A stretch of DNA of 64,000 nucleotides from Blastocladiella emersonii ATCC 22665 (Eukaryota > Fungi > Blastocladiomycota), in NCBI GenBank assembly GCA_025594325.1, contig JANHCV010000010.1:310001-374000 (forward strand), given 5' to 3'. The notes beneath the pieces are model-generated. The model worked only from the letters and a program-made list of their open reading frames with translations. It was not told the origin of the DNA and ran no database searches. This document shows positions 5,460 through 64,000 of this stretch, piece by piece. How positions within the stretch are numbered: the stretch's first letter is position 1; each line of letters opens with the position of its first letter. Both the position numbers and the translations under genes were made by a program.

Positions 5460-5633
5460 CAGGGGTGCTAGTGGGGTGTGCGAGGCCGAAGGCCGAGCGA
5501 GAGAGCAAGACTCCCAGATGGCGGATCACGTGTGCGCGCGACGCGTGTCGGAGAAATCGCTCACCGTGTCGGAGAAAACGCCAAAAGGGAATCTGCTCGC
5601 CCTTCGGGCTCGCACACCCCACTAGCACCCCTG
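5460..5633. mobile_element. 174-bp MITE with ~42-bp TIRs and a 7-bp TSD
   Basis: Left CAGGGGTGCTAGTGGGGTGTGCGAGGCCGAAGGCCGAGC is the near-perfect reverse complement of right GCTCGCCCTTCGGGCTCGCACACCCCACTAGCACCCCTG. GTTGAAG is duplicated at 5453-5459 and 5634-5640. Confidence 0.92.
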
Positions 5634-5756
5634 GTTGAAGTTTGAGCGTGTCGCGCCACGGCGTGATCGTGATCGCCGTGAGGGGCGTGCGCCACACGGC
5701 CAGCGAAAATGCTCTGCGGTCCAGTAGCGCGTTCCCATTGCGCGAATGTGAAGCTC

Positions 5757-9846: not shown

Positions 9847-9882
9847 GTTCCCGCTCAAGTTCCCTCGTAAGTTCCCGCGCAA
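9823..9882. repeat. 12-bp tandem repeat x5 spanning the LRR gene stop codon
   Basis: GTTCCCGCTCAA/GTTCCCGAGTAA/GTTCCCGCTCAA/GTTCCCTCGTAA/GTTCCCGCGCAA. Confidence 0.9.
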
Positions 9883-10078
9883 GTCCAATATATCTTCAAA
9901 TTGCTCTGCGAGACTCGCGAGTCTCGTTCACGCGCCGGAGCGACATGCCACGTTGCCCAGTGGTGCTGCTAGCGGCGGGGGAGGAACCGCGTTGCGCCAC
10001 CACGTGTGGCCTGCGCGGAAATCGCTCGAGCCGACGCAGCGATCGCGGTTGCGCTCCCACGCCGTGCACGCGAAACTC

Positions 10079-11155: not shown

Positions 11156-11236
11156 GCAAGCGACCCCCGCTCAACAGCAACTACATCCCGCTCACCCACA
11201 AGCGTAATGAATACACACACGGATCATTCTATTCCA

Positions 11237-20571: not shown

Positions 20572-22266
20572 TCATAGTTCCAGGGCCCTCGTCACGACGA
20601 GCCCTTCATGCAACGACACGATCTTAGCGAGAACCACGTCCTCGATGCTCGTCTGGACAACGAGCTTCCGCAGCGTTGCCGGCAGCTGTTTCGCGAGAAA
20701 CATCATGGGGCGATCTTCAATGTCCCACGCCGAGATATCGAGCGACTCGAGGTGCGGCGGGAGGTCCTTGGCAAAGTAGAAGTGGACGCGCCGCGAGGCT
20801 TTCCGGTAGTGGTTGATGGCGAGATGCTTGAGCGAGGGCGGAAGCGCGCCGACGAGCGAGTCTTCCTTGGCGGTCGGTTCGTCCGTGCAGGGGATCACGA
20901 ACTCGAGAACCTCGAGGTTCGGCGGGAACTCCCACGTCAGCGCGCCGTGGCCGGTGGCTTCGTTGCCCGAGAGCTTGAGCTGGCGCAGGCCCGGCGGGAG
21001 ATGGCGCAGGACCGCGGCGACGCCTCGCGCATTCGACCGGTTGTCCGTCAAGTCGAGCAGCGTCAGGCTCGGCGGGAGGTTCCGTGCGAGGATTTCGAGG
21101 GGACTCGTGTCAGTCTTGTTGCCGCCCTGCCCCTGCCAAAGACCCGCCGAGGAGAGAATCAGTTCCTCGAGGGTCGGTGGCAATGCCTGGCAAAGGGCTA
21201 CGACCGCGGGCGCATCAAGGTTGATGTCCGTGAACCGAAGTCGCTTCAGCGTGGTTGGGAGTGGTCGGTCAAAGAACGGAGCAAAGGAGCAGGGGACAAC
21301 GTTGTTCAGCAACAAACTGCGCACAAGCTCGGCCGGAAGGCTCCCAAAGTCGACGGCGCACTCATTGTCGCTGATGTCGAGCGAGACAAGAGATGGTGGA
21401 AAGTAGGGCGTGCCGGTCAGCGAGCCGCACAGGGTTCCCTCTGCAGCAGGACCTGTGAGAGCCGTCTGAAAGTCAAATCCGCAGTACTTGCCGGTATCGC
21501 CAAGCCGGTTCGCGGATAAATCGAGGTGCAGGACCGTGTCGGGCAGGTCGAGCTCGATAAGGTGACCATTGCTGATGTCGCAGTTGCTCAGAGAAACACG
21601 AGTCACGCACTGCTCACGGCTAGCAAAAGCAGTCGCGAGTTGACGAGCGCCGGCAAGCGTGATGCGCTTGCCCGTGATTGATACCGAGTCGACGCGCCCA
21701 GCTGCAATTTCGGGCGCGATGGATTCGATGGCGACGTCGCCCGCCGGCCGTTGGTTCATCGTTTCCTAAGGAGTCGACAGTTAGACCTTCACGGCGGGAG
21801 CATCCTAGAGCAGGCCACGTACGTTCACGTCAACTGTGCACCCACTCGCGGCCTTGTCGGCTGGATCTGGGACGTTGAAGATCACGAGAGCTCGCGCCTC
21901 GAGGGATTGAACGGGCTTGAAGCGCAGCCCCAAGTCGCGAAGCTGCTCAAGGTACCCGAGCCGCGCCCCTTTTACAAGAGGGAGCAGGTCAACAGGCTCG
22001 TCGATAATCCGCATTAGCTTGAGAATCTCAGCATTCTGCTCGAAGATCGCACGACTCACGTCGTATGTCGCGAGAAGCTCGCGAAGCCTGTTGAAGGCGG
22101 CCCGTTTGACCTCGGGAATCTCGCAAAGTCGCGCGACGCGTGTGTACCGCGCCATCGTCGTCAAGGAGATGTCCGACGAGGGATGGTTGCGAACGGCCCG
22201 CACGAGCACGCGATTCATGACATCGGGCATGGCGAGTTTAACGCGGCAAGTTGCATCAGCTAACAT
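20572..22266 (-). CDS. F-box-like + RNI-like LRR protein, 2 exons
   Basis: N-terminal LAMPDVMNRVL. A phase-0 intron near 21766-21822 (GTACGT..CTAAC..TTAG) joins ORF 21805-22266 to ORF 20572-21759. LPPSLxxLDL repeats. Confidence 0.8.
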
Positions 22267-23505: not shown

Positions 23506-25861
23506 TCACGTGAATCGTTCAAGGAGAGTTGTGAGATGTTGCAACGCTCCAATGGCCCGGATGAGCTCTTGTTGACCCGAGCTGGCGACAGCAGGGTTCA
23601 ACTCATCGTCGACGATTGATGTGTTGAACAACTGAAGAGATTCAAACTGTGCCGGAAGAAACTGTGCGAGGCTCGCGAGATCGTTGCTATCAAGCGGGCA
23701 ACACGGAGTTTCCAAGTCGCGCAGCGACTCGGGTAAGTAGGGAGCGAGCGCTCCAATGGCACCCTCGCATCGCAGTGTCAGCGCTGGACCGCGGCGAGCT
23801 GCCGTATCAGAGGGGGAAACGAACCAGGATACCGAGCAGGTACGTCTCGAGGTTGATGTGCAGCATGTCGATCGGGCTCGGGACCCGCGACTCGACGGCC
23901 GGCGCGTGAAGGACCGACGACGAGCGAAGCGGAAGTCGCGACGTGATCTGCTCAAAGATTACCGACGCGGAGCGCATCATGGACAAGGAGGAGCGCTGCG
24001 GGGAGAGGGACATTGAATCGAGCGTGGGCGAGGGGGCCGACGACGGCGTCAGCAGCGTTTCTGCAGGCGAAGGTGCCGAGAGCGAGTCGGCCTGAGAAGA
24101 GGTCGTTGCAGAGCGGGTCGAGAGGAAAGCCGGCAGCAGGACCGCGCCCATACCGTCCGCACCACCACGTCCAGCAGGGCCAGCATCGTCGGCGCCAGCC
24201 AAGGGCGGCGGTGTGAGTGCCGGCAGTCGGTCCCCGATCGCGACCGAATGTCGGCGCGCAGCTGTTGGCGGAAGCGGAAGCGGCAGCGGTGCGGGTTTGA
24301 GCGAGGCGGGCGCCTCGTTCATGGACACGCGGAGCGTCACCTCACTCGTGTCGGATCGCTCTGACTCGGCGTTCTGGTCGGCCGGCGGGTCGGGCGTCTC
24401 GATGCACTCGGCCGTGCTCAGCGTGACGCGGGGCGCCTGCAGCGCGGCGTCCTCGTACGCCGAGAGCACCGAGCCTGTCTCGAAGCGCGAGCTGCGACGC
24501 CGGTTGGACAGCGGGTGCGTGTGGGCGAGCTTCGCGGACAAGTCCAGCGGCGGCTGTGCGACGCTGCCCGCGGCGACGGACGACGCGCGCCGTGTTCTGC
24601 GTGGAAGCGTCGGTACGGCGGGTTCGGGCGCGACGTTGAGGTTGGTGATCGACAGGCGCGCGTCGTATTGTTGTTCCATCGGGCGCACAAGCTTGGTAAG
24701 CGACGCAGGAAGACACGGCGCAAGGGACTGAACGTCGGGGAGCGTCAAACCAGCATGCTTGAGCATGTGGCAACTAAGAGAACGCGGGAGCGAGCGTGCG
24801 AACGATGCAAAGGCGGGTGTAGCCTGCGAAGCCAAAATCGCACGCTTTGATTTCGGGCCGTGTATAAACTCGCATTGTCGAAAATGATAAATAGCCGTCA
24901 GCGTTTGAGGAAGGTACGTCAAGAGGGTAGTCGATTCGTCGAGACGGCTGAAGTCGTAGTTACGAAAGTCCAAGATCTTGAGCTTAGCCGGAAATAGTTG
25001 GCCGAGTGCAGCGTCGCAACCGTGGTCAACCCACAACTGGTCGAGCTGCAAATGCTCAACAGAGTCGGGAAGAAGGGGCGTTGAGGCGAGGGCCGGCGTC
25101 TCCTGCGCAAGATTGTGGCACATACTCTCGATCTCGACTCGTGTCACGGTCGACGGAACATTGATCAGGCGAAATGACTCGGGCCGCAAATTGCACGGGT
25201 TAAACTTCAAATATTTGAGGGGTGGATCGCGAGGAATTACGAATTCATTGTTGAGGCGGGTGATGGTCTCGGGAGTCAGCCGATCGCCGAGGTACTCCAG
25301 GAATGCACCATCGTCCTGTTCACTGTCGTCACTGTCGTATCCCGTATTAATAACGCCATCTCCACCTTCATCCTCGTCTGGACCAAAATGGGTCGGTGAG
25401 GCCTAGCACGGTGGCGAAAGCGTGGGTCAGCGCGAGATAAGTTGAAGGGCATGCTCAGCGTAACCCTTCAGGTTTGGTCACGACGCGAGATCCGAGCACG
25501 CCCCGTACGATTTTGGCCGCAGTCCCACGAGCATAGTAAGTAAGCGACGGAAGCGGAAGGCCAGAGTCGTGCCAAAAAATCGAGAGCTCGATAGTGAAGA
25601 TTTTCGCTGGCGTCGAGAAGTGCGTTGACCGAGTACGTCAAGGGAAGCCTCGATTCACGCCAAAGTTCAAGTGCGGACACGCGGGCGCGCTTGCTTGATT
25701 CGTTCATGGAAAGCATCGGAGAGGTGAGCAGAATCGTGCGTGTCACGCGCGGAATATCGGCGCGCCGCATCACACTCGAGTACTGTGCGAGGCGCCTGGA
25801 CGGCATAGCATAACACTTGCTCAATGAGTTGCGGTAAGTGCAAGATCGCTCGAGGGTTCAT
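23506..25861 (-). pseudogene. F-box/ankyrin/LRR pseudogene (paralog of 7930-9846) interrupted by a foreign fragment
   Basis: MNPRAILHLPQLIEQVL and ALELWRESRLPLTY lie in different frames. LRRs occur at 24690-25200 and resume at 23506-23780. Confidence 0.75.
23780..24679 (-). other. Captured ~0.9 kb fragment (putative first exon plus partial intron of an unrelated S/P-rich gene)
   Basis: Begins ATG GAA CAA CAA TAC in frame after LPASLTKLVRP. GC-rich and non-LRR. Ends with a GTTCGT donor-like site and a GCTGAC branch-like site but no acceptor before the LRR sequence resumes. Confidence 0.55.
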
Positions 25862-39661: not shown

Positions 39662-41338
39662 TGGTGCGCTGCTGACGAACCCGTCCCCACGGCCGGGCCC
39701 GCGGGATCCGCGGCGGCGGCGGCTTGGGCTTGAGCGTGAGCTTGGCCGCGGCCATTGTCGGTGAGGTTGTTGGGGTCGAGCGTGAAGCCGAAGATGTTGA
39801 CGGCGGCGTTCTGGTCCCGTTGGACGTGCACGCCGCAGCGGGGGCAGGCGCGCTTCTGGTACCAGGCCTTGTCCTTCTTCTTGCCGGTCAGCTTGAGCTC
39901 TGAGTCGTCTGACTCCTTGCACCGGGGCTTGGGGCCGACGACGTAGCACGCCGCGCACCACTTGGACGAGTAGTGCTCCGAGACAATGTACGTCGGGATG
40001 CGCGCGGCGCGCAGGTGGTGGATCAGCTTCTTGACTGGGGCGCTGAGCTTGCACGAGAGGACGCTGAAGCCCTGGAACGCTGAGCTGATGACGACGACCG
40101 TGTCGCGCAGCGAGTATGTGAGCTCGGCCCACCACCGACGTTCCTGCAACTCGTTGAAGAACCGGAGCCGCGCCACGCGGTTGTTGAAGGCCTCAGCCAG
40201 CTGCATGTCGAGCGTCTCGACGAGGAACTTGGCGAACTTGATGGGGTCCTTGGCGTACTGCGACAGCTTGGCGTAGACCTTGTGCAGGCCGTACTCCTTG
40301 GCCCACAGCTTGCGGCACTTGGTCATGGTGTGGTGGCCGACGTCGTTGTGGAACTTCTTGGTCAAGCACGACCATAACAGCGCCTTGCAGCGCACAATGA
40401 CCGACATGACGCCGCGGGCGACCTTGCCAACCTGCTTCATGAGGTCCGAGTCCTTGAGCGCGGCGGCGCAGTTGACGAGGCCAACGAGCCGCTTGTGGGC
40501 GGCGCGGTGCTCAGGCGTGAGGACGAGGGCCTTGTAGATGTCGCGCTTGCTGGGGTCCATCCACACCTCGACCTTGCCGTTGGGGTTTGGGATCTGGCCG
40601 ACGTGCACGCCAAGCGGGTTGCGGCAGCCGGGAATTGGCGGCCGCAAAGGCAATGATGACAAGGATGACAACAACGGCGAGGTGGGCTTGTGCTTGGCCT
40701 TGGACACGACCTTCTTGAACATGGCGTCGCCGCGGCGGTTGATGCGCTTGAAGGCACCCTTGGACTTGGCCTTGGCCTTGGCCTTGGTCAGCACCTCCTC
40801 GCGCCTGTCCTTGGACTCCTTTGGCCAAATGCCGCCCTTGTACCCGACCACGCGCGCCGTGTAGCCGTCGGTGAAGAACACGCCATTGAACTTGTTCTTG
40901 ACAGGCACGCCGTCCTTGAGCTTGCGCAGGATCGAGGGCTTGAGGATACCGTTGAAGCGCGACACGAGGAGGTCCCAGTGCGCCTGCACATTCTTGGCAA
41001 TGATCGGGGCGTTGCGGGCGATGTGGGCGGCCTTCTCCTAAGGCTTCTCGCTGTCCTCGACAGGCTCAATCGGGTCTGACTGGGCCTTATTGACGTACTC
41101 GCGCAGCTTGAAACCCTTGGCGCCGAGGAGCTTGTGCACAGCCTCGCCGTCAAACTGGACCATGGGCCGGCTGATGACAAGCTCGGGGATGAGCTTCATT
41201 GAGACTGGCCCATACTTAAACCTCGACACCTAGGGAACAATTGAGCTTGTACTCAACGCAACTCCCAACTTCAAGCTTGTTCCGCACACTGTTTGCGCTC
41301 CGCCAAAGCTGGACGAGGGGTACTGGACCATAAGCGAC
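39658..41338 (-). pseudogene. Fanzor1 remnant B, C-terminal portion; one nonsense codon; predicted 58-bp intron at 41230-41287
   Basis: FFTDG; RuvC-I WMDPSKRDI; APVKKL; RuvC-II VSEHYSSK; CAAC..CPRC; RuvC-III QRDQNAAVNI. In-frame TAG at 41038-41040. Confidence 0.92.
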
Positions 41339-41367
41339 GCATCGCAAAACCTGCAGCACCGCTCTGG

Positions 41368-46870: not shown

Positions 46871-47188
46871 AAAGTCGGATACCGGCAAGCGCTCGTGCTT
46901 GTATCGTTTTAGGGCGTAACCGCACGTTCCACCTTGATTTCTGCTTTGCGAGCATCTACTTCAATTTGAGGTCGCAGCTGGCTTCGAGACCTCATTCAAT
47001 CCCTAAGGTCACCCTTATGCATTAGCTCACACGATAGCCGTTGCGAACGTGCCCAGAACGAGGAGGTTGGCTGGTTGGATAAGCGACGCGCAGCGCCACT
47101 CACGTGTGGCGACCGCCACACCTCTGTCACCGATGCGGCTTCGCTTCCCTCGCTCACCACCAAGCTCCAGGCAATGCAACGCAAACGA

Positions 47189-48856
47189 ATGGAGCAACTT
47201 AATGCAAACTATTATCTGCACGATCGAGCCACCGTGCACGCGTCGCCCTCATCTGCGTCAGCGCTCTCGCCAAATCTCGATCGCTCGGCGGTCGTCGCCT
47301 CGCGGTCGTCGCCACTTCCAGTCTGCAACTCGCCACCTGCTGGTCTGTGCCTTGATCTTGTTTCTGCTCATGATTTCTTTGGACGAAATGATCGTACTTT
47401 CGTTGATGGATCGCGTTCGCCCTGCTTAACTTCACGCGACCTGCCTGATGGCGACCATTGGTCGGCGCAATCCGTCATCACGCCGCCCCGCGCGATTTGT
47501 TTCTCCCCACGACGGTTCGACCTATTTGACGATGCGGCTGTTCATTTTCCGCAACTTCTCGAGCCATGGAACGTCGCGGACTCCATACCCTCATTTGGTG
47601 AATCCACGGCTCCCACTACGGTTTCCAATACTTCGACCTATACTTCAACTCCAGCTCGCTCAATCAATCACGCGTCACCCATGCCCTTCAGCGCTTCGTC
47701 GGTGCAACTTCCTGGACACAGCGCATTGGGCCACGCTGATGCGTCGACCCAACTCCCGCTTGATCCTGCCGACAATTTCAGCAACGCCGTGCACACGCGA
47801 CCAAATCTCACATTCCTCGTTCTGATTTACATGGCACTTGCTTCGGCGCCCGATCATACTATGGCAGTTGGAGAGCTTTATTTGTGGATCACACAAGCAT
47901 ACCCTTTCTTCCACTCTCTTCCTCGCTCGCATCTCGTGGTTCGATGCTCTCTAACGTGCATCTACTTGCCAGCATCATTTACGCAGACCGCGCTCGTGTA
48001 GCAAAAGCTTTCCAGCAGGCTTTCACACACATCCGAGTTTGTGAGGCTTCCGCCTTCAATTGGCTCGAAGACCGGTCGTTGGACGGCCTCGCAGGACTTT
48101 GTAGACGCGACCCTTGCTAGCGTTGAAGTCGACCCTCATGTCTCCGGTTCTAGCGACTCTCGGGATGACAACCCCTGGTCGCGCGGCGCGAAAGTCGTGC
48201 TTGAGTCACCTGCCTCAAGCGCGCACGAGCTTGAGGAGACTGAAGCGAATTCTGAATCTGTCCCACCAGTCGCATCTGGTCGAACAAGGTCATGGAGCCG
48301 AGTTCCTCTCAAGGTGGTGGTTGATCCTGCAAATGGGACGATTTACCAGCGGCCCGCCCTGACTTACGCCCAGCTTATTTGCAAGGCGCTTGGGTCCACG
48401 CCGGATCACACAATGACGGTGCACCAAATCACGACCTGGGTGACCAGCAACTACCCGTTCTTTTGGCACGTCAAGTTTGCGCAGCTGAGGGTACTTGACT
48501 TTGCTGCACCACCGCCCGTCTGGTCGCACTCACTCTTACGTTCCGTTTTCTTGTAGGAATCCGTCCGTTTACAACTGATGAGGACCGCAGCCTTCTCACC
48601 CGTTCCATCGTCCGAGCGCGCCCCAGTTTGTGGCCAAGATCAGGCCTGGACTTCGGACGAAGCAACTATGGCCAAAATTATTATGAACTCAAACATGAAA
48701 GGACGGCCCAAGCGCGGCACCCGGACAAAGCGACCAGTTCATTCTAACGACGACGAAAATTGTCAAGCCGGCTCGCCGATCGCGTCTGCCCTCGAATCCA
48801 CGCCCAGCAAGGGCCCCGCCGCGCGGGATCCAAAGCGGCGTCGTCGCGAGGAATGA
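47189..48856 (+). CDS. Divergent forkhead protein A (two forkhead domains, 2 introns)
   Basis: RPNLTFLVLIYMALASAPDHTM..LYLWITQAYPFF|QKLSSRLS..GRWT and RPALTYAQLICKALGSTPDHTM..NYPFF|ESVRLQL. LPVCNSPPAG motif. Confidence 0.8.
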
Positions 48857-49410
48857 ACCCGATCTCCGGCCAAAGTGTCAATGAGGGCTTCCAATAAACC
48901 GCCTCCATACAGAAGTCGCACCATCGATAGTTACTAGGAGGAGACCTCAGTGGGAAAGAGTTGCTCCACGAGTGAACCAGCTGATGCTTGTGACACTTTG
49001 AGGTTACGCGCAGCTGTGTTGCCTCGAGTTCAAATTAGGGCACGCGGCAAGCATTTTCCTCTATATGTTATTCAAAAACACTGCATATCAAGTAGCAGCT
49101 GGTGGGGCGCATTGCGGGTAGCGCGGAAAGCAGAGAGGTGCCAGTCGGAAATGAGTGCCTGGCGCGAGCCCGCATGGCCTCGGCACTTCGGTTGCGCGAG
49201 AATGAGAGCACAAAGAGTTAAAATATACGTAAATATTGCTTTTTTGAAGGTGGGATCATCCGAGCCGTCTCCAGCGGTCAACAATCTCGAAATGAGCGCC
49301 GCGTCGGGCGACGTGGCGCCGCGCGCTCATGTGATTGGTGCACGCGCGCGCCACCACTTTCTCTCCCCCTCGCTGCTCAAGCACTCTCTGTACTTCACAC
49401 ACGCAAACAA

Positions 49411-50836
49411 ATGGAGTATTTACCCGGTGCAACAGCTTTTCGACCCGCACACCATGCCCGGGGCGCTGAGCTTCCGCCGCCTCGACCAATTTCGGCGAGA
49501 TACGCTGCCGCCTTCGAACGCGTCGAATCGAAGTCATCTCCGCCCCTACCCGACTGCCACTCGCCGCCTGTCGGTCTACCACCACGTTCGGCGCCCCTCG
49601 GGAGCGCTTCCTCGCGCGAATCACCGTGGTCTTTCTTGGCTACCACTGACCAGTCGCCACATCCGGCCTCGTTCTTTGATCCAAACGAGACTTTCCCGTT
49701 TCACGCGTCGGATTTCTTCAAGACGTATCTCTCGACAGCTTCGAAAGCCCGTTCCTCGCGCGAATCCCGCTCATCTGAGCAGCACTCGGATTCCTCGCTC
49801 TCGCAGCCCTCCCCCTCTCTGCTTCGGCCTCAGCTATGGCGTCAGCTTCTGCAGCACCGTGATTCTGGAGTGTGGTCTGCATCGCGACAGAACTTGCCTA
49901 TTTCCTCGACCCCGGCGGCGTCTGCTCACGCGCCTACTGCACCCGCGCCTTCTGCACCCGCGCCTCCAGCACTCGCTGCACCGGCACTCGCGCCTACTGC
50001 ATCCGCGGCTCGTGCACCCACAGCTCCTCCAGTTCCTCTTGTACTAGTGCCCTCAGCAACGCTTCGACCACCAGCGTCCATGACTTTGACAGCTCAGCTG
50101 CTCGCTGACGACAGCGTTACATATGAGCGACCAATTTTCACCACGAAGCACCTCATCTGCGAGGCCCTTGCGTCGGAACCCAATCGCTCGATGACTATTG
50201 CTGATATCGTCGCTTGGATTGCTCGTCGGTACCCGTACTTTCGCTCCAGTCGCGCGGAATACCATCGCCTTCAGGTCCGTGCGGCTCACAAGCATTCCTC
50301 CTTCCGCGTCGAAAGCTCACCCTCGATTCGTTTAGATGGCCGTGACAAACAGGCTATCGCAAACCCCCGAATTCGTCCGGATCCCGACTGTCGAAGACAA
50401 CGGTCCGGAAATGTGGAAGGCTTCGCAAACGTTTCTCTCTCACGTTTTAAATCGCGGTCGTGACGACGGGCGCGCTGTCGGCACACACACGCTTCCCGCC
50501 CGCCAATTGGATCACGAACCGGCTGCTGTGGTCGAGCCACCTGCCAAGCGCGCCAAGAATGTGCCTTCATCTCCCACGCCGCTGTCGCCACCGCCGGCCT
50601 CCGTCATCAACGGCGAAGAGGAGTGGATCGTTGAGGCCATCCTCGATACGCGTCGCGTGGGTCGCTCCGTCGAGTACTTGGTTAAGTGGTTCGGTTTCAC
50701 CAAGGAGTACGACACGTGGGAGCCATACGTCAACGTCAAGAACCTCGGCAAGGTCGCCGAGTTTCACGCGGCGCACCCGGGCAAGCCGGACCCTCGTCGG
50801 CGCAAGTACAAGGGTAAGCATTGCGCGGGACAGTAG
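49411..50836 (+). CDS. Forkhead + chromodomain fusion protein B
   Basis: RPIFTTKHLICEALASEPNRSMTIADIVAWIARRYPYF. A phase-0 intron (50275-50335) joins it to MAVTNRLS..MWK and to EEEWIVEAILDTRRVGRSVEYLVKWFGFTKEYDTWEP. Confidence 0.85.
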
Positions 50837-51385
50837 CGCGCGCTCCCCGCTTTGTGCGCCACGCGCCGTTCGAAACTTGTATACCCTTGAATGTAATCTG
50901 ACTTGTGTGATTCTATCGTAATCGTTGCGTAGCTATCTTGGCGTTTTCAGTGGTTGTGGCTCGTTGGACTGCGCTGTACCACTGCATCAGCGAGACTCGA
51001 GGGTTGTTCCGCCTTGAGACCTATTTGAGAGCATGACGCGGAATCGACTTGAATCACTTGATAGGTCGAAGATACCTTTGCTTTTCATCCGGCCAGCGTT
51101 CGCTACTCGTTGCGGCGGCTGATGGCGCCGCTGGGAGGAGCAGCCACCTTACGAACGTTCATGTCAAGTCACTTTCCATTGACAAACCGATCTGCTGACG
51201 CCAGAAATGCTCATGAAGGACGTCCAGTGCGGCCAGCAGCGAAGAAACTGCCAGCACGCGTGATCACGCTCGAGGGAGACATAACACGTGATGTGATCAA
51301 GCCCCCGTGGCTACGTTTGATCAGCTTCACTGCGGCTTCGCTCTCGCTCGTGGTTGACGGACACTCGCTCACTTGATGAAATCAG

Positions 51386-52387
51386 ATGAATAGACCTTAT
51401 GCAACGCCTTCCGGGTCCTCGCAACTTACACCGGCCGAGCCTTCGTGGCCCGCGGAGACGGAAAGTGACCCGCCACGGTCGCCGTCCCTCCCGGACTGCA
51501 ACTCTCCACCTGCTGGCCTGATCTTGAGCCCGCTTCTTGAGCCTAGTTGGCTCGAGCTCCAACCGAATGCAGTTTCTCACGACCAAGCTTCGCTCACGAG
51601 CACGTCTCTTGCTCATTCGAGCTCGAGCCTGTTCCTTGCCGACGCTGAGCTCGTGGATAGTCTGCGCGATTCCAATCGGACGACCATACTTGTGCACCCG
51701 CAGTTACTACCTCGACCCGAAAATGTGCAATTTGGAGCGGATCCTGGATTGGTTTCACCGCTTCTAGCCGTGACCGAAAATCATAAACCACCGACAGCCG
51801 AGCTGCAACACCAGACGCGATTTGCTGTTGGCCATGCAGCCGTCCCTTCTCGCTCGGGGTCCGTCGAGTCAAGTTCCGATTCCCAAGCTTCTATCGTTGC
51901 GCACGGATCCGCTACCGTCCGGCGTTTGCTGTTTCCAAGGAAGACCATCCAGAATCGAGGCTACCTTCAGACTCAGACAGCGATCGATCCAGCGACGGGT
52001 GCTGTTTATTCACGGCCGCCTCTCACGCTCCCTCAGCTCGCGTGCGAGGCTCTCGCGTCGACACCAGACCGCATGATGGTCTACGCTCAAATTTACGATT
52101 TTATCACGGAGAAGTACCCGTTCTTCCGCTTAATGGAGAAGAAGCGATTCAAGGTACGTTGAAATTGCGCGATTGGCATAGCTGGCGTTCCCTCTCGTTA
52201 ATCCTTTCAGTTCACGCCGCCGTAGAGTATGCTGTCCACGGCCATGTCAAACAGTCCAGATATCCTCAGGGTGAACCTGCCCGTCGAGGGCAAGAAGGCG
52301 ACTGTCAGCTACTGGACGACATCAGAGAGTTCGATGGCCAAGCTTCTACGGCCCGAAACGCCTTCCAATCCGGTTACCGAGCACTAG
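51386..52387 (+). CDS. Divergent forkhead protein C (one domain)
   Basis: IDPATGAVYSRPPLTLPQLACEALASTPDRMM..IYDFITEKYPFF|SMLSTAMS..SYWT. LPDCNSPPAG motif. Confidence 0.75.
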
Positions 52388-52734
52388 ATCTGCCGAGTGT
52401 ATTCCAATAATTCGGCTGTTATGTCCGGTAGCTGGGACCGCACGTCAAAAATAGATTGGTTGCTTCTTACAGATCCTGTAACGCGAAAACGGAAGCCGCC
52501 TGAGACATTTGAACAAAATCAACAATTTCTTGCTACATATAATGTTTCGACTGAGCGCCCTAGCAGGGGTACTGGCGTTACGCTCACCGTGAGAATGCAT
52601 TGGAGACGCGTTCTGAAATCATGTGGGCTGCACGTGGGCTTGAGACAATCGGTTCTCACCGCACGTGGCTGAGGCGAGCAGCCTGCTCAGCTCGGATGAT
52701 CGCAAATTCGCGACCGCTGGCAAAACGTAAACTA

Positions 52735-54821
52735 ATGGAACTTGACGCAATGGACCCGGATCAACCTGCTTTGTTGTGTTCCGGGATGCTGTCGGCGCAA
52801 GGACGAGGCGAGGTCAGTGGTCCTGGTTCGCCGCTTCTCCCGGACTGCGACTCGCCTCCCGCCGGAGTCGCTCGAGCGGAATCACCGCCGACAGGTTTCT
52901 CACTGGATCCGGCGCCAATGCCACATTCGTTTGTTCCCGGTTTGGACCAGGCGAGCTCAAACCCGCTCTCAGACCCAGGCGCTCGCGTTGCCGGCGAGCT
53001 TCCGCAATCGGTCAAGATTTACCTCGAGCGAATCCCTTGCCACGCTCCCATGCCGGTTCTGCCACCTGCGTCATCGGGTATCCGGCCATCTTTGCCAGCG
53101 GTTCCCCCGCCGCACCTACCTCCACCGCCCTCATTCTTCCCGCCACATCACTCGACCGTTTATCTACCGCCACCGCGTGCGCCGTACTTACCGAGCGTTT
53201 GGCGCCCACCAACTCACGGGTTCCCCGCGTCGTACTCGACCTATGTGGCATCGCGCGTCTCAAGCATGTACGCGAACGCCTTCGCATCTTTGCCGAGCAC
53301 CCCGGCCTCATACGCCTTTTCGATGCTGGCTGCAGTCGCGCCACCGCCTTCGCTGCCTCCGTACTGGTCTAGCGTGTCGTTTTCCGTCCCGCCTCCACCG
53401 CAACCCGAAGCAAACCTGCTGCCGCCGACCTCATCGCGTCCTCCGGAATTGCTTGGTCAATCTGCGCGCACCCCGCCCGTCGTCAACAAGGTCAAAAAAC
53501 GGGCTCGTACCCGGCCCCCGGTTGTTAAGGCCAAGCAACCGAGGAGTGTGCAGGCCCGGTCCCCTGTTGAAAAGGGCAAGCAACCGCGGCGCGTGCCGGC
53601 AAATTCCGCGTCGCGGAAAGCTGAACAGTCAATCGTTGATCCTGCGAATGGTGAAACGTACATCCGGCCGCCCCTCACTTTTCGCCAACTTATTTGCCTT
53701 GCTATTCACTCGACTCCCACGTGGGAGATGCGGCTGGCAGATATCTACTAGTACATCATCGACCGCTTTGATTTTTTCCGACTTGCGGATCCCGTTTCTT
53801 GGCAGGTGCGTGCGATGAACGCGGCATTTCCTCCTAGATTTACGCGTGGCAAACAGCGCTAACTTCAAACCACCTCGTCTGTGTAGAATGCCGTCCGACA
53901 CAATCTCTCGGCCAATTCTGGCTTTTCTCGCGTGAAGCGCGTCGCGTCCAAGGACAAGGGAGACTACTGGACCGCCACGAAAGAGTTTTTGGAGCGCGCC
54001 TTCTCGACGTGTCCCGAGTACAATCCGTTTGAGACCTCGCCCACGTCATCCGCACTTGGAGTCGCGGCCGAATCGCCCGAGGGTGGACTTGACGCTGTTT
54101 CGGCCGATGTGGGGCCGCTTGAGCTCCCGCCGCCTAATCGCACGGAGCTCATCTGTGCCGCTCTCGCTTCCACGCCTGATCGCAAAATGACCGCTGCCGA
54201 GATTCGAGCATGGGCTCAGAACGAGTACAAGTACTATCGTCTCAAGGATAGCTCGCGCTTGCAGGTATGTCCGCCTGCAGATTCTTGGCCGCTGGCTCGA
54301 TCTCCCACATTAACCACACGACTTGTTGTATCCAGGGTGCAATCAGCAGCAAACTCAGTAGCCACCAATGCTTCACTTGGGTTGAGCGCGATGCGTCCGT
54401 AGCTTGGCCCAAGGCACGCGGATTCCTGTGGACAGCATCTGACGCCTTCATCGAGGAGACGCTTGCCCGTCGCGACGCCATGTTGGCAGCGTCAGCACGC
54501 CCAAGTCGCCGCACCGCAGCCCCATCAACCAGTATTGCGGCTCAGCCTGTCACGGTGGACGAGGACGAGGATGAGGATGAGGACAACAACGCCGATTCGG
54601 AATCTTCTCTTGCCGACTCTGACTTCGAATCGGACACCCTTGTCGAACTCGTTGCGCGCAAGCGACCGCGGCTCCTTGGTCCAGATTCGGACCGGTCCGA
54701 CGACGAGCCGGCCAAGAGTACGAACATGGACGACTTTGCGCACTGCGACATCCGCGAGAGCAAGGCCCTGAGTCCGGTCGCCCCCTCGCGCGCCGTGGAT
54801 TCGCTGGGTTCGCGGGACTAG
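52735..54821 (+). pseudogene. Forkhead protein D (two domains) with an in-frame TAG at 53749-53751
   Basis: RPPLTFRQLICLAIHSTPTWEMRLADIY*YIIDRFDFF..WQ|NAVRHNLSAN..KGDYWT. Second domain PPPNRTELICAAL..|GAISSKLSSH..FLWT. Confidence 0.8.
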
Positions 54822-55102
54822 GAGTCGATCCTGACTCACAACGCATTTAACTGATCTCATTTTTGTTCCGTCAAACGCACATGAATTCCTTGAGATGCCT
54901 GGCGCCGAGCCAGCCGTGAACCGGCCACGACGCGCCGAGTGAGCGAAATGACGCGTCGCGATATCACGTTGTGGCGCGCATGCGCGCGAGCCGATTTCTC
55001 GGCCGCGTTCGAGTCGCTGTCTCCCTGCCCGCGACCAATACCTCAATGAAAAGCTGATGAACGCAATTTGCAATTTCTGCATTTGAATTACAAGAACCTA
55101 TC

Positions 55103-55921
55103 ATGTTTACACAACCGAGTTTGGCAGCGGTTGAGCACGGGTCCCCGACCCTGCCACCCTGCGATTCCACGCCCACTGGCTTCGCTACTTCCGCCCATTT
55201 ATCACCCCCAGCATTTGCCCCCGGACCTCGAATTTTGCAGTCTCATGGACTTTCAAACGAGGAGCTCGCTGATTGCCCCGTTCCTGCAGCGTTGCCTCGC
55301 TTGGAGCGACCCCCAGCAGTCCAAGCTCGCGCTCAGGGGTTTGGGGCGACCCCATCATCTGCTGCACCTATCCCGTTCTGCGGGCTCCCAAACGAGGCGC
55401 TAGTTTGGCCTGCTCCCGCCGCGTTGCCTCGCCTTCCAGTACCCCCGGCTGTTCCATCTCATACTTTAGCGACTGTTGCGGCGTCGTCGGCACCTAAATT
55501 CGTGCCTCCTTTCCCGGCCGCGGTCGCTGCACGTGTCCCTGCTCCTGCTCATGTTCTCGACCCTACTCCTTGCACGAATTTCAGCGCTGCGGCACCAATC
55601 ACCATCACGAGCGACGAGCCGCCGCTCACGGTCGTCGCGCAGCGGTCACACGTCCAGTCATCCACATTGCTGGCACCGATGCTTTCACCAAGCTATCCGG
55701 TGGCGCTTCCCACTTGGCCCTCTGCGCTGCCCGCGTTTGCCGCACCTTACTACCCGTACCCGTCTCCGCAGCTATACCAGCAACACGTTTTCCAAACGAG
55801 ACTCGCCATGCTTCGCGCGTCCGCGGCCTACACAAGCTACGCGGGAATCCAACTCTCTTCCGCAAACACCGCGTCGCATCTCGCGCCCGATTCAAACTCT
55901 CCGACCCACGGAAGGCGCTGA
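55103..55921 (+). pseudogene. Forkhead-array paralog E, N-terminal part only (no forkhead domain)
   Basis: LPPCDSTPTGF variant motif and a P/A-rich region like its neighbours; ends before any winged helix. Confidence 0.6.
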
Positions 55922-56081
55922 TAGCGAGTCGTCTGACGTCTCCGCGCTGTCGAGTTGATTTAGACATAAACGTGTTTATACTTATCGAGAGGCTCTTGTC
56001 ATGCGTGCATGAAAATTTATCTGGACTCGTCTCGGGGCATGGAGTGACCAAGTCCCGAAACTGCAGAGCGGAGACAAAACG

Positions 56082-56104
56082 GAGACGCGTTGCGAAAACA
56101 CGTG
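56082..56104 (+). promoter_or_regulatory. Recurrent promoter motif GAGACGCGTTGCGAAAACAC(G/A)TG (MCB core ACGCGT); copies at 52603, 56082, 57722, 58802, 60690
   Basis: Near-identical 20-23-mer about 110-150 bp upstream of forkhead D, F, G and H, plus an orphan copy at 60690. Confidence 0.7.
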
Positions 56105-56227
56105 TGCGCCACTGCGCCACACCGTCAAACAGGACGGCCTCGACGTTTGGGCTTTCCATGCGCCGCGTCTCTTGGGCAATAACCTCCACCTTTACATGCA
56201 TGAAAACGGATGAATTAAGTTGATGCA

Positions 56228-57314
56228 ATGGACTCCATAGACCGACACGCTCGCATGACGAGAGCGCCGTTGCCGCTCGAGTTGGCTCGGCCATCGTCGC
56301 CGATGGGGCTGGCCGAGACGACGCTCCTCCCTGACTGCGACTCACCACCGACTGGATTCGCGGTGTGCGACTCTCCACCAGCCGGTTTCTCCCTGTGCGA
56401 CCTCCCGGCAGTTGGACTCGCCCTGGATGCCGACCCTCTTGATTATGCTGCATCGGCAGTCCCAGCGGCAGCATCGCTCCCATTTATGCCCAACTCGAGC
56501 TCACCGGCTTTCAACTCGAACCATGTGCATCCTCACTCACCTTCGCATGTAGAACAACCGGATACGGTCCCTCTGCCGTTCACGATGGCTTCACACACCG
56601 AGCCGCCGCATTCTCCCGACCTCGCTGTGCATGACGGTGCCATGGTCTCCCATTCCGATTTTTCCGACTCGCGCCAACAATTCCTTGCTTCGCACGCCCC
56701 CGAAACAGTCCCTACGGCCTTTGCACCTCTTGTCCAATCGGTAGCCAATGTCGACGTCAACCCACCGCCGCACTTGGAAGCGCAGTGCGCGCCTGATGTA
56801 CCAGACTTGCTGCAACCAGCCCCACGAGACCGATATTCTCTTGTTGATCCAGAGGACGGAACTGTCCACTTTCGACCAAATCTCTCAATTGCCCAGCTCG
56901 CCAGTCTCGCCATCGATTCGACCATTGAAAAGCGGATGACGGCGCTGGATATTAACGCTTGGGTCGTTGCCAATTTTTCCTACTTTCGCCTCGCTCAGGC
57001 ACAGGGCAAGGTACGCTGGTCTCGCGCGCAGCTGAGCCTACGCTCTCGTCTGACATTGCCTTGCTCTCCCTGGCTGCCATGGGCGGAACTTGTAGCCCAA
57101 CTTACTAAAGCGACTCTCGGGTCTCCCAACCCTTTCGCTTATCCCGCGCCTTGCACCTGACGGAAAAAAGCTTCGCCGTGGGTACTGGACGACCTCGGCG
57201 AGCGATACCGAGCTTGTACTTGCTCGATCGAGGGCCAGTGCCAGCGCCCGCCCAGCGGGAGCATGTTTGGCGCCCGCGCTGCAACGCGATCGCCGATATC
57301 GCGCCCGTGACTGA
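56228..57314 (+). CDS. Divergent forkhead protein F (one domain)
   Basis: RPNLSIAQLASLAIDSTIEKRM..NFSYF..K|PNLLKRLS..RGYWT after a GTACGC..TTGTAG intron. Triple CDSPP-like motif. Confidence 0.7.
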
Positions 57315-57395
57315 TAACGGTGCCCCGCCGACACGCGACGCGAGCGACCAGCCGCACCTCCCTCCGTTGAGGTACGCGCACCGCGCAGCACTTGG

Positions 57396-57524
57396 GCGAC
57401 GCGCTATGCTGCGACGCGCTGTGCTGCGACGCGCTATGCTGCGACGCGCTGTGCTGCGACGCGCTATGCTGCGACGCGCTGTGCTGCGATGCGCTATGCT
57501 GCGACGCGCTATGCTGCGACGCGC
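57396..57524. repeat. 15-bp minisatellite (GCGACGCGCT(A/G)TGCT) x8.6 with A/G alternation
   Basis: Directly visible. Confidence 0.95.
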
Positions 57525-57833
57525 AGCTCTCCGACCCCAGCGGCAAGTGCTGCCGTAGCGGCGAACTTCATTACTCGTTCAACGGCCGCTTCCACACAAT
57601 TCAGGCAATCGCGCTGTCGCACGGCGCAAGCGCTCAACGTGGCGCGGGCTTTAGCCCTCGATTGAAAACCAGACGCGAAGCGTCAGGTGGCTCAAGTATA
57701 ATCGACATGAAACGTGAGACAGAGACGCGTTGCGAAAACACATGACAGATGGGCGGCAGATTTCGAGCCGAATCTACGCGAGCCACGGTTTTCCCACAGA
57801 GCTCCTCGCGTCAGCATACTCCCATGAAATCGA

Positions 57834-58670
57834 ATGGAGGAACTTGGTGCATTGAGCTTATTATGCCAACCTGTAACCATGACCGAAGTGCCGTTACCGC
57901 TTGAGTCGGCCGAGCAACCGTCGCCGCTGCTTCCCGGCTGCGACTCTCCACCCGCTGGGTTCGCCGCGTGTGACTCTCCGCCAGCTGGCTTTTCTCTGGC
58001 AGCCGAAAGTAGCAAAGCTCGTGGTGACGACGCAGTGCCTACCTCAGTTGCACACGCGCCCGCGCGTATCTCGCCCGCCGCGGCGCCAATCTCAGCGCCA
58101 CTTTCGTTGCTCCTCGACGAGACGCGTCATCTCTCGGTCAATCCTCGTCGCGAGCAACCTGCCACGGCTTCAATCGCATCAACACCAAGCTTGCACTCCG
58201 CTTGGTTTTGGTCTTCGCCGCCAGCCCCAATGACCGCGGTCTCAGCTGCTTCACTCCAAGATGCCTTTGCGATCCATATGGCTGCTACTACCGCTGCATA
58301 CGCACCGTACTTTGCTGCACCCGTGCTCAATGCGCAGGTTGCTCGTGTTGTTCCCATGGTGTCTACTCACGCACCGCCACTGCTTCCGCTGCTACCGGTG
58401 CAATATCCAAGCGGCAACGGCTGGCCGGGGACCACCTTTCAACCGATGCTCGAGTCGAACGATACCCGCGACGCCGTCATCGACCCGGCCGACGGAAAAT
58501 TGCACGCGCGACCGACCCTCACAATCAACCAGCTTGTCTGCCTTGCCCTAGACTCGAGACCGGACAAGAGGATGTTGGAGTGGTCAATTTTCGATTGGTT
58601 TCGAGAATCGTACCCGTACTTTCGCCTCTGTGCAGACGTGTCGTGGAAGGCACGATGGTGGCCCTTGTAG
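57834..58670 (+). pseudogene. Forkhead protein G, truncated after helix 2
   Basis: RPTLTINQLVCLALDSRPDKRM..ESYPYF..SWK followed by a stop. I found no exon with the recognition helix or wing. Confidence 0.65.
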
Positions 58671-58920
58671 GATCTTCGACTCCGTCATCTGAATCGCAAA
58701 GAGATCCGTCAACCGCGCTAACTGAATCATGATCTGAGTCTGCTTGGTCCTCTCCGCGAGAGAGTCGCCGAGCACCCCCGCGTCGAGGCGTGAGACAGCT
58801 GGAGACGCGTTGCGAAAACACGTGAGGGGTTCAGCCACACGTCCGTCATGTTGCCGCCGCATCCGACGCGCCAAAGCTCCACGCCCTGCTCCACGCCCCC
58901 TCACTCCCTCATGTTATCGA

Positions 58921-60575
58921 ATGGAAGAACTTGCTGCATTGCAATGAGCACATCACAATGAAAACAATGTCGAACGCGCCGTCGCCCCTCGAGCCCAAAG
59001 CGCCGCCGTCGCCGGTGCTTCCCGGCTGCGATTCGCCGCCTGCTGGATTTGCGGACCGCGCAGCTCCGCCAGCTAGGCTCGCTCTTGAATGCGTCTCTCT
59101 TGACCTTGTTGTTAATGTGCCAGCTCCAGCGGTGTATCCACACCCGCAATCGCCTCCGCTTGCCGCCGCGACTACCAGCGCCACGCCTGTTGTCGCGCCA
59201 GTGTCGACCTCGCCGCGCTGTAACTCAGCCGGCAGACCTCCCTCGTCATCCGGTCCGTGTGGTGGTGAACGCTGTCATTCGTCCTCGTTCGCGCCGGACG
59301 TGGCTCCACATCTCGTCCCGCCCTACACGTCAGTCTTGCTTCTTCCGCCTCCACCCGTTCAGAATGCTTTCCAAACGCAAATCCCCGCCGCGAATTTTTC
59401 CCCGTACGGGCTTGCATACACCTCTTACTCGTCGTACGCCGCTGCCCCTGCGCTTTCCTCCACCGCAGCGTTGGCTTGGCCGACGTGGGTGCCGCCACCG
59501 CCTGTCCCCTTCGCTGAACTTCAGGGCCATTCGAGGAACTCGAGCACAACACGATTGGCGCCACCGTCGACTCCTCCGCCCGCGGCACTTGTCGGCCTGA
59601 CAGACGGCCAGTCGTACAACCGGCCATCCTTGACGATCAATCAACTGGTCTGCCTTGCGATTGACTCGACGCCCGACAAGCGGATGATGTCGACAGGCAT
59701 CATTGATTGGATCGAGACAGCTTACCCGTACTATCGGCTTTTGTTGTCCGCTGCGTGGCAGGTACGGTGTCAGCTTGATCGCACGAATGCAAGAAATAAG
59801 CTAACTTCGGCGACGCGTGCCAGACCGATGTACGGGAATATCTCGCGAGCCGCCCAGAGTTCCGTCGAGCCTCACGCTACAGCCCCGACGTGCGTGGCCA
59901 CTATTGGACGGTGTCTGAGGACTTTTTGAACCGCACCCTTGCGAGCGTTGCCGACTCCTCGCCGTGTCCTTCTACTTTGGCCTCGAGTCGCCCTACTGTT
60001 TTACAATCGCGCTCTCAGGATGAGCTCGAGCCCGAGCCTGATGCAGCTTCGCCTTCAAGCAACGGTGCGCGTGATTCGGGGACTGACGATGCAGCAGTAC
60101 CAGGCCAGCAAGGGGACGAACGCCCGCCGCACAGCTTTCCCGACTTGATCACTCTTGCCCTTCTATCCTCGCCCGACCTCAAGCTTACGCCCGCCATGAT
60201 TTCCGAGTGGATCACGGACACGTACCCGTGCTTTTGTCACAGCAGCAAGCATGCGTGGGTCAAGGTGCGCGTCCGAACCTCTCTCCACCTTGTTGATCAA
60301 TGACCTCACCCGACCACGTCACGGGCGGCGGATTCTGGACCGTGTCCGATGTGGGCCGCGATTTCATTCGAAAGCGCGGTTTGGACGGCGTAGCAGCAGG
60401 TCTCACGCGCCCATCGAAACGCGCGGCGTCCATCTCCGTATCGAGTGATGAGGAACTCGGCTCGGGCGACGGCGGCAACAAGGACGCGAGCAGTTCAGGG
60501 AACAGCTTGGATGTTGGGACCGCGCGCGCCAAGCGGAAGCGCGCGCGAACGTCGGATTGCGAATTCGATTCTTGA
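58921..60575 (+). CDS. Forkhead protein H (two domains; the second is damaged and the MEEL start is out of frame)
   Basis: RPSLTINQLVCLAIDSTPDKRM..AYPYY..WQ|TDVREYLASR..GHYWT and RPPHSFPDLITLALLSSPDLKL..TYPCF. The wing GGGFWT lies in another frame. Confidence 0.65.
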
Positions 60576-61000
60576 ATGGATGTTGTTGGTTTGTCATGAT
60601 CTTGTCACTCGTCGCTCTGCTCTTCAGATCGCGCCGCCCCGGACCGTGGGCAGGTCACTCATTCGTCTCGCGGCCCGCCGCGCGAGACAGAGACGCGTTC
60701 CGAAAACGCGTGTGGGTGTGAGCCACCGACTCAGCTGCTTCCGCGCGAGCGCGTCGGGCGCGCGCGAGTCGCGCTCTCGAGTCTGGGTCGCGTCAAGGCG
60801 GCGCACAACTGGTCCATGCCGTCGATGGTGTTGAGTCTGAGCCCGCAGAAGGAGCGCGCTCAGGTGCAGGAATCGAAGGCACGCAGCGCAAGCGGCTGTG
60901 GGTTTCCGATTCGGATGTGCGTCTTGATGAGCATAGCTCGCAATTCGATCGAGTAGGGCCTAAATAAAAGTGTATCACACGCCGCCGTCACCGAACCAAA

Positions 61001-61826
61001 TCACATCTTCTCGTCGGCCTCAACGATTTCGCTGAGGTTGAGCACGTCGAGGCGGCCCTTCCCCTTAGTCTCGGCCTGGAGCAGCTCGGTGAGGATGCGG
61101 TACTGTCCGGGGTCGATGAGCCCCGCGATCGTCCACTCGGCGGAGGACCAGTCGTCCTCGTCGACCTCGGTGAAGGCGGGGACGACCTTCTCCTTGAGCC
61201 GCTTCCCGTCCTTGACGGGGATGGTGACGCGGACGCGCATGCGTGCGCGGGCAATGGGGAGGACGCCCGAGGACTGGAGCTCGCGGATGATCTCCTTGGC
61301 CTGGACCTTGGCGGGCCGCGTCGGGTGCACGTTGACGTGGACCTCCTGCATGGCCTTCTCGATCATGGTGGTCGGGTAGGCGCGCTGGGTGTCCGGGTTG
61401 ACGCAGGTCTCGGAGATGATGGTGGCAATGTCGCGGTACACGTTCTCCATGGTCTGCGACCGCTCCTTGTCCGAGACCTGCAGCTCGCCCTTCTTGAGGA
61501 TCTCGAGGCAGATGGCGTCCTGGTCGGTCGTCTTGAAGGCCTTGTCGAGGTCCTCGGCCTTGGCCAGCTGGCCCTTGGACACGTTGATGAACACGCTGCT
61601 GGTCTGCAGCACGTTGTCGATGTCGGTCTCGCTACACGTTGTTGTGGGTCGGCATCAGGATCGGCCCAGCAATGACACGGAGGAGTCAAACGCACACGCC
61701 GTTGCGCCATTCGAGCACCTTGTTGCGGTAGCACGCAATCTCGAAGCGCTTGCCGCCGCGCTTGTAGCGCACGATCGACACGTTGGTCAACTTGACCTGG
61801 TTGGATGGCGAGAAGATCTTGGGCAT
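61001..61826 (-). CDS. SDO1: Ribosome maturation factor SBDS/Sdo1
   Basis: [43 protein letters not shown]|..[24 protein letters not shown]. One intron. Confidence 0.97.
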
Positions 61827-62174
61827 AGTTTTGCAAGAAGTATGGGTCGCGGTTGCGCCAAGTTGCAACCGGGCTCCGTTAGTGCTTCGTGGTAGTGGGT
61901 GATGGATGGCGGAGCGAGGGGGGAACGACTCGGCCGAGCAGTGAACGAAGCGCCGTGCATTGCGCCACCGGCGTGACCAGTCGCCGGGCGCGCGCTGCTG
62001 ACTCGTTCCGCTCGCCGTCGGTCCGTCACGTCCGCTCCCACAGCTCCGCCGCTCCCCACTGCTCGTTACTCTTTTCATGTAACACCCGCCAAAGTCCATG
62101 CATCGCGCCCGAAACCACCTGCAACCACCACCCGAGTAACCGCCACCACCCACACCGCCAACCCGCCCCGCACT

Positions 62175-63863
<1,689 letters not shown>

Positions 63864-64000
63864 GGAGGGGACGGTGTGATGGAACGCGTGTACATACCAA
63901 GGCTTTTGTTGTAAAACGGCTGGTTCGAGGTCTGAGCGCGTCGTAAACGATCCATGCCCGAAGTCGAAGGCGAGGCAAGGAGTGATGGCCGAAAACGCGT

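Follow-up and report, generated by a model that had tools for sequence, protein, structure and literature searches.

Canonical forkhead (Fox) genes, such as yeast Fkh1/2, Hcm1 and Fhl1 and the animal FoxK/N/J types, number four to six in ascomycetes (PMC10287902, PMC4174854, PMC10699268). The Asn and His of the N(S/A)IRH motif in their recognition helix (helix 3), N54c and H58c, are base-contacting and usually make direct contacts (PMC8501956), and those changes in forkhead specificity that are on record occur with the contact residues unchanged (PMC7062188, PMC12143875). Blastocladiella emersonii ATCC 22665 (GCA_025594325.1), in contrast to the ascomycetes, carries forkhead genes in tandem arrays. 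Here, we describe one such array of eight co-oriented predicted genes, G1 to G8, at JANHCV010000010.1:357189-370575. It occupies positions 47189-60575 of the window, the whole stretch of 64,000 nucleotides that was analysed, and adding 310000 to a window coordinate gives the record coordinate. Window 51001-64000 was compared with the record (segment 361001-381826) and agrees with it without a single mismatch in 13,000 bases. Judged from the predicted proteins, the forkhead scaffold is retained across the array and the residues that read bases are nearly all replaced.

A six-frame hidden Markov model (HMM) scan, with a profile built from the N-terminal halves (N-halves) of the array family itself, picked up ten forkhead N-halves in the window and no more, each of them on the + strand and within 47744-60261, and each of G1 to G8 starts with the motif SP.LP.C.SPP.G (the N-motif). 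The eight co-oriented paralogues in 13.4 kilobases (kb) proposed in a first-pass annotation of this DNA are borne out by both observations. The gene-by-gene architecture likewise matches its count of three genes with two domains (G1, G4, G8), three with one (G2, G3, G6), one with half a domain (G7) and one with none (G5). The shared unit plan runs from the short N-motif through a long, disordered spacer rich in Pro, Ser and Ala to one or two forkhead domains.

All eight genes are on the + strand, and protein lengths are given without the stop codon. G1 (47189..48856; join(47189..47938, 48002..48490, 48557..48856), 511 amino acids) carries the N-motif, two forkhead domains, both with a non-canonical helix 3 (QKLSSRLS and ESVRLQLM), and a basic C-terminal tail. 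A single domain is present in G2 (49411..50836; join(49411..50274, 50336..50836), 454 amino acids; helix 3 MAVTNRLS), where the N-motif and forkhead domain are followed by a C-terminal chromodomain, in G3 (51386..52387; join(51386..52153, 52226..52387), 309 amino acids; helix 3 SMLSTAMS), which has one N-motif, and in G6 (56228..57314; join(56228..57010, 57096..57314), 333 amino acids; helix 3 PNLLKRLS), which has the N-motif in duplicate. G4 (52735..54821; join(52735..53805, 53887..54264, 54336..54821)) encodes two domains with the helices NAVRHNLS and GAISSKLS, a KRPR run and a C-terminal tail with an acidic tract. G5 (55103..55921) is a single open reading frame (ORF) of 272 amino acids comprising the N-motif and the family mid-region, and lacks a forkhead domain. 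G7 (57834..58670, 278 amino acids) has a duplicated N-motif and a forkhead N-half only. G8 (58958..60303; join(58958..59761, 59824..60303), 427 amino acids) encodes the N-motif, a complete domain with the helix 3 TDVREYLA and a second domain of which only the N-half is left.

The array domains share the PF00250 signature of canonical forkhead proteins. On unspliced exons, six first-exon N-halves scored 29.1-38 bits with this Pfam profile (cut-off 27), and among later exons G4 exon 2 reached 54.7 and G8 exon 2 47.4 bits. Below the cut-off as halves were G6 (22.7 bits), G7 (23.0 bits) and the N-half of G4 domain 1 (14.2 bits). Most C-terminal halves, taken by themselves, diverge too far to be picked up by Pfam; those that score are that of G4 domain 1 and, in part, that of G8 domain 1. 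After splicing, all eight complete domains in the window matched positions 5-92 of a 97-position HMM built from 58 canonical forkhead domains, with 34.9-90.3 bits, and all eight show the complete order of helices 1, 2 and 3 and wing in one frame once the intron is removed, as canonical domains do. The first domain of G7 and the second of G8 are halves only and do not count as complete. The domains thus score as forkhead both on exons with Pfam and on spliced domains with the canonical HMM, as the first-pass annotation expected. The buried Ile, Leu and Phe positions and the wing Trp are kept, which lends indirect support to a predicted winged-helix fold.

Eight GT..AG introns of 61-85 nucleotides, all in phase 0 and at a homologous codon boundary, are predicted directly after the canonical WQ (WQ|N), just before helix 3, so the shared intron claimed for every complete domain is found in eight of eight. 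Its position is not peculiar to the array. An exhaustive profile search over 1.84 billion representatives gave 7,680 hits at an E-value of 0.001 or below, of which the best 150 were examined, and 61 of these 150 are fragments of ORFs that continue across a GT immediately behind W(Q/K). Since so many matches read through at the same position, and many database genes of canonical type have a phase-0 intron just before helix 3, the intron is an old forkhead intron and not array-specific.

It is in the recognition helix that the array departs from the canonical pattern. The eight complete window domains were compared with 200 random sets of eight canonical domains from across eukaryotes, among which helix 3 is conserved. 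Mean column entropy was 1.31 bits per column in helix 1 against 1.15 in the canonical sets and 1.58 against 1.34 in helix 2, so that these helices are about as variable as in ordinary forkheads. In helix 3 it was 1.98 against 0.78, with 1.21 as the highest of the 200 samples, a roughly 2.5-fold greater variability. The base-contacting Asn position is occupied by eight different residues in eight domains and the His position by seven; when G4 domain 1 is left out, the remaining seven domains still have seven residues at the former and six at the latter. N(S/A)IRH, kept in canonical forkheads, is recognisable only in G4 domain 1 (NAVRH), the domain that carries a stop, and both its N and its H are absent from the other seven of the eight complete domains. 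The amphipathic pattern of helix 3 is kept, position 4 is still Arg in three of the eight domains, and most domains have retained the Lys/Arg of the F.(K/R)V strand as well as the wing Trp. The altered helix may reflect either a loss of sequence reading or new DNA specificities.

The paralogues are 25-35% identical in pairwise comparisons, and the domain tree has the shape of a star, its terminal branches reaching about 1-1.5 changes per site. The only supported subclade of window sequences is (G6,(G7,G8d1)), where G8d1 is domain 1 of G8, and domain 1 of G4 falls beside canonical sequences. Together with the hypervariable helix 3, these values agree with the earlier description of the array as fast-evolving. 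Tandem paralogues diverge independently, with no sign of homogenisation, and the coexistence of intact and disabled tandem copies in a star-like tree fits the birth-and-death evolution that had been proposed. A single in-frame stop is present in the 3,229 codons of the coding frames; judged by the other two frames, about 70 would have been expected, and the probability of zero stops is 1e-3 to 1e-6 per gene. Neutral evolution, which the first-pass annotation had named as an outcome that would speak against its proposal, is rejected by this preservation of the ORFs. Because frames have stayed open over a long divergence, most copies are read as protein-coding genes that appear to be under purifying selection on the protein, with little on codon usage.

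Four of the eight genes have a lesion (G4, G7, G8) or no domain (G5), and the mixture of intact and disabled copies that had been reported is evident gene by gene. In G4 an in-frame TAG (53749-53751, +) interrupts helix 2 of domain 1, whereas the two exons that follow have kept their frames open. That the TAG is a sequencing error is improbable, since the assembly is based on PacBio HiFi reads polished with Illumina reads (PMC9730499). The intron of G7 has collapsed to 21 nucleotides (58650-58670, +) with a GC donor, and its former acceptor TAG, now in frame, is the stop of the gene. In domain 2 of G8 the acceptor and helix 3 are deleted, and the remnant (60300..60575, +), in another frame, holds the wing GGGFWTVS and the old C-terminal tail with KRKRAR; a hypothetical GT..AG intron of 110 nucleotides (60265-60374) would rejoin this tail in frame. 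G5 aligns to the N-terminal and middle parts of G4, G7 and G8 and ends before any domain, and profile scans detected no forkhead remnant downstream of it. A possible ninth, degraded forkhead copy was observed at 41090-41353 (+), some 6 kb to the left of G1 at the left edge of a transposon region. A C-half profile gave it 20.6 bits, while none of 12 controls, shuffled or reversed, scored above 12.2, and its local alignment to domain 1 of G6 has a z of 6.5. It contains stops and lacks the intron, and a plausible ORF on the minus strand (41038-41229), possibly part of the Fanzor gene, overlaps it.

Compared with canonical Fox proteins, the array adds the invariant N-motif. Its first copy is at 47303..47347 (+) and the other nine are at 49534, 51476, 52825, 55139, 56315, 56345, 57918, 57948 and 59006 (+), that at 57948 being the second G7 copy (CDSPPAGF at 57969-57989). 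The variants seen follow LP(D/G/V/P)C(D/N/H)S(P/T)P.G. Nine columns of this roughly 13-residue linear motif, which is not a domain, do not vary among nine proteins, of which seven come from the window and two from a different contig, and whose identity to the first sequence is just 23-35%. By analogy, the motif is a candidate effector module for a common cofactor.

Five of the eight genes (G1, G4, G6, G7 and G8) also share an upstream element, ACGCG-N(8-14)-CAYRTG, about 90-150 base pairs before the ATG. It is represented by GAGACGCGTTGCGAAAACACGTG before G6 (56082..56104, +), with related copies at 47086-47106 (G1), 52606-52625 (G4), 57722-57744 (G7) and 58802-58824 (G8); the array's own form is also written ACGCGTTGCGAAAACACGTG, and the 23-nucleotide core is nearly identical before G6, G7 and G8. 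The pattern has nine matches in the window against 3.0 expected, and none of 100 shuffles reached nine. The element contains GACGC and AAAACA, and the FHL motif is GACGC-like while AHAACA is a secondary FKH motif (PMC12143875, PMC8501956); this likeness is only a lead for possible autoregulation. An orphan element, GAGACGCGTTCCGAAAACGCGTG, is present after G8 (60690-60712) with no family gene behind it, and may be the remnant of a lost copy at the array edge. Between it and the end of the neighbouring SBDS gene (60713-61000) only a 46-amino-acid ORF was observed. Elements of the ACGCG..CAYRTG type also occur at 5527-5546 and 7769-7788 in the left part of the window, near unrelated ORFs with low GC content at third codon positions (GC3).

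One copy adds a further module. The chromodomain of G2 (about 50624-50767, +) scores 47.3 bits with Pfam Chromo (PF00385, cut-off 25.1) and matches HP1 alpha (CBX5) at 2e-11, and its aromatic-cage positions are all aromatic (W/W/F, against Y/W/F in CBX5). G2 has this domain in common with HP1/CBX proteins, but lacks a chromoshadow domain and carries the chromodomain fused behind a forkhead domain. No description of a forkhead-chromodomain fusion was found, though no search aimed at that combination was made. Basic runs resembling nuclear localisation signals, the acidic tract and the chromodomain, distributed over G1, G4, the old tail of G8 and G2, are nuclear-type features, and by eye no hydrophobic signal-peptide-like stretch is present at the N-termini. 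The suggested likeness to an immune or effector array finds no support in these features, and the idea of secreted effectors was set aside on the same N-termini.

The DP..G..(Y/H) extension together with a non-canonical helix 3 was found, among the 150 matches listed, only in KAI9159405 and KAI9159406, which are adjacent B. emersonii proteins on contig 12, and among these matches the library held nothing closer than 51% to any array domain. The combination is in this sense restricted to B. emersonii, in agreement with the proposal of a lineage-specific family. A second locus (L001, JANHCV010000012.1:822348-844352, positions 3860-12005) holds seven forkhead domains and two N-motifs in 8 kb. All seven domains have an intron at the array position and a non-canonical helix 3, and all match the canonical 58-domain HMM once spliced. 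The public models at this locus are two fragments of 116 and 225 amino acids. The locus looks like a duplicated block of multi-domain genes, and in the KAI9159406 model the helix 3 of one domain is removed as if it were intron.

Beyond B. emersonii, the closest sequences among the matches listed, with up to 51% identity over the N-half, are FHA-forkhead proteins from Logan assemblies (P0040, P0146 and P0070) and a metagenomic single-copy gene (P0060, locus L004). The former share the extension VD..G..(Y/H).RP..(T/S) before helix 1, and the latter shares both the extension and the intron site with the array. Unlike the array genes, they are single genes among housekeeping genes, lack the N-motif and have a canonical or near-canonical helix 3 (NAIRHNLS, in P0060 among others, and WHNSVRHQLS); proteins of the P0040 type have an FHA domain and no intron at the array site. 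Such relatives with the extension and a canonical helix are consistent with an ancestry of the array from this kind of gene. Proteins with two forkhead domains had been called uncommon, and although they are rare they are not unique to the array. Locust, whitefly and coral models (P0001, P0002, P0006, P0010, P0022) have two to eight forkhead domains in one predicted protein, against one or two in array proteins and possibly three or four at the second locus. Those animal models lack the N-motif, helix 3 is less diverged in most of them, and some may be fused models of tandem genes. Five to eight domains in a row were observed in the animal and other eukaryotic proteins P0001, P0002, P0004, P0008 and P0009 (e.g. 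Schistocerca LOC126108830), many with an altered helix 3. Either the same thing may have happened there in parallel, or tandem genes may have been fused in the models.

The explanation we consider probable is that the array belongs, as one cluster of several, to an expansion of forkhead-fold nuclear proteins specific to Blastocladiella, which has diversified by birth-and-death and would have acquired new binding preferences. Each gene has its own promoter, in five of the eight with the ACGCG..CAYRTG element, and the array grows and shrinks by tandem gene duplication, by domain gain and loss, and by point or deletion lesions. Selection has kept the frames open, the hydrophobic core of the domains is conserved, and the base-reading face of helix 3 differs in almost every copy. 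The proteins would have given up the canonical mode of reading RYAAAYA sites, and would instead have preferences for DNA or chromatin that are new and differ from copy to copy. The N-motif common to them would recruit one shared partner, and G2 would add methyl-lysine chromatin reading of the HP1 type. Low GC3 and the failure of the ab initio callers together suggest low or stage-restricted expression.

Several observations weigh against this explanation. The GC3 of the array genes, 0.57-0.64, equals the intron and intergenic level (0.55), while it is 0.90-0.96 in SBDS and conserved neighbours and 0.68-0.75 in other lineage-specific families in the window; the array values resemble relaxed or very weak codon selection. 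Ratios of nonsynonymous to synonymous substitution (dN/dS), computed on N-halves by the Nei-Gojobori method (NG86), are of no help, as dS is above 1 or undefined for window pairs; where defined, the ratio is 0.2-0.6 on about 50 codons, and it was not used on account of the saturated dS. Half of the genes are damaged or without a domain, as described above. Domain net charge ranges from +1 to +7, a little lower than the +5.2 that canonical domains have on average, and the entropy at the contact residues of helix 3 fits a simple loss of constraint as well as it fits diversifying selection. In addition, exact look-ups in public collections found no record of G5, G7, four other array ORFs or several neighbouring ORFs. 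Similarity searches gave little more: a word-index protein search with G8 exon 1 had no match, one with an alignment of nine first exons had none either and was probably swamped by low-complexity candidates, a metagenome DNA scan with the G7 N-half found no relative, and an atlas search with G5 returned only disordered transcription-factor-like regions below useful scores.

One may speculate further on the basis of a functional analogy with the KRAB zinc-finger clusters of vertebrates. These too are tandem, combine a conserved N-terminal element with variable DNA-binding modules, vary at the DNA-contact positions and mix live and dead copies; their fold is unrelated to forkhead, and the N-motif of the array is a linear motif and not a domain. 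By this analogy B. emersonii would have a comparable system on the forkhead fold, with dozens of clustered genes, an invariant recruiting N-motif and base-reading residues under diversifying selection to follow fast-changing targets such as transposons, and with G2 tied to heterochromatin by its HP1-type chromodomain. We regard this as a tentative and rather unlikely elaboration.

That the array proteins are pseudo-transcription factors, in which the fold is kept and sequence-specific DNA reading is lost, is doubtful but deserves serious consideration. The domains would then be non-specific DNA or nucleosome binders of the linker-histone type, or protein-binding modules, and targeting would be left to partners of the N-motif or, in G2, to the chromodomain. 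The forkhead domain closely resembles the globular domain of histone H1 (PMC8501956), and the absence of both contact residues from seven of eight complete domains, the somewhat reduced domain charge and the fusion of a forkhead domain to an HP1-like chromodomain with an intact aromatic cage in G2 all point in this direction. Helix 3, however, is still amphipathic with its Arg at position 4 in three domains, and the basic strand residue and wing Trp are mostly retained. A surface free of constraint should drift, but duplicates of great age have still kept one or two folded domains in each protein, as though every domain had a task.

A set of silent, unexpressed duplicates decaying from a once-functional forkhead gene is a considerably less likely account. 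The non-coding level of GC3, the lesions in G4, G7 and G8 and the domainless G5 would suit it, as would the possible further degraded copy at about 41.1-41.35 kb and the public annotation, which has no gene calls in 51001-61000, the part of the window that holds G3 to G8. The single in-frame stop where some 70 were expected, and frames that are open through very long divergence, argue against it, as does the conservation of splice sites, N-motif, upstream elements and core residues amid positions that are otherwise saturated. The missing models have an explanation of their own. Gene calling for the annotation relied on funannotate and ab initio predictors, with no mention of RNA sequencing in the paper (PMC9730499); predictors trained on GC3-rich genes would miss an array whose codon usage differs sharply. 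An origin of the units in a mobile element, as its cargo or as pieces of it, is extremely improbable, whether the agent of spread was the neighbouring transposon (Plavaka/CMC with Fanzor, 39.6-46.9 kb) or a retroelement that donated the chromodomain: chromodomains do occur in Ty3/gypsy integrases, but the best matches of this one are cellular HP1/CBX proteins and an atlas search confirmed the chromodomain family without pointing to integrase architectures, each unit has an old spliceosomal intron, and the idea of transposon cargo was rejected since no inverted or long direct repeats bound the units and these are far too divergent for recent transposition.

If the expansion of forkhead-fold proteins with new preferences is confirmed, the array would constitute a natural library for re-engineering winged-helix specificity. 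A scaffold that is kept while the reading face is rewritten in every copy would be new, and no clustered transcription-factor family with such rapid diversification would have been described before from a fungus of an early-diverging lineage. The published annotation lacks a gene model for at least six of the eight genes. Since such unmodelled genes differ in codon usage from those on which predictors are trained, the gene count of B. emersonii, and perhaps of its relatives, is probably underestimated in this fast-evolving compartment.

The window as a whole (1-64000) falls into two codon-usage compartments. The conserved genes with their high GC3 (0.90-0.96) are located in DNA of 64-74% GC, and the lineage-specific families in islands of 57-60% GC with a GC3 of 0.57-0.75. 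The islands in question are formed by the forkhead array (47-60 kb) and by ORFs at 3982-9846, 20572-21759 and 23807-25210. To the right of the array, an SBDS exon (61001-61609, -) is 100% identical to H9P43_007597 of B. emersonii ATCC 22665, with Catenaria (78%) and Allomyces (72%) as the next best matches. Within the array, the spacer between G6 and G7 contains a 15-nucleotide tandem repeat, GCGACGCGCTATGCT, in 8.6 copies with 92% identity (57396-57524), and a second 15-nucleotide repeat (49915-50019) codes for the Ala/Pro-rich part of G2.

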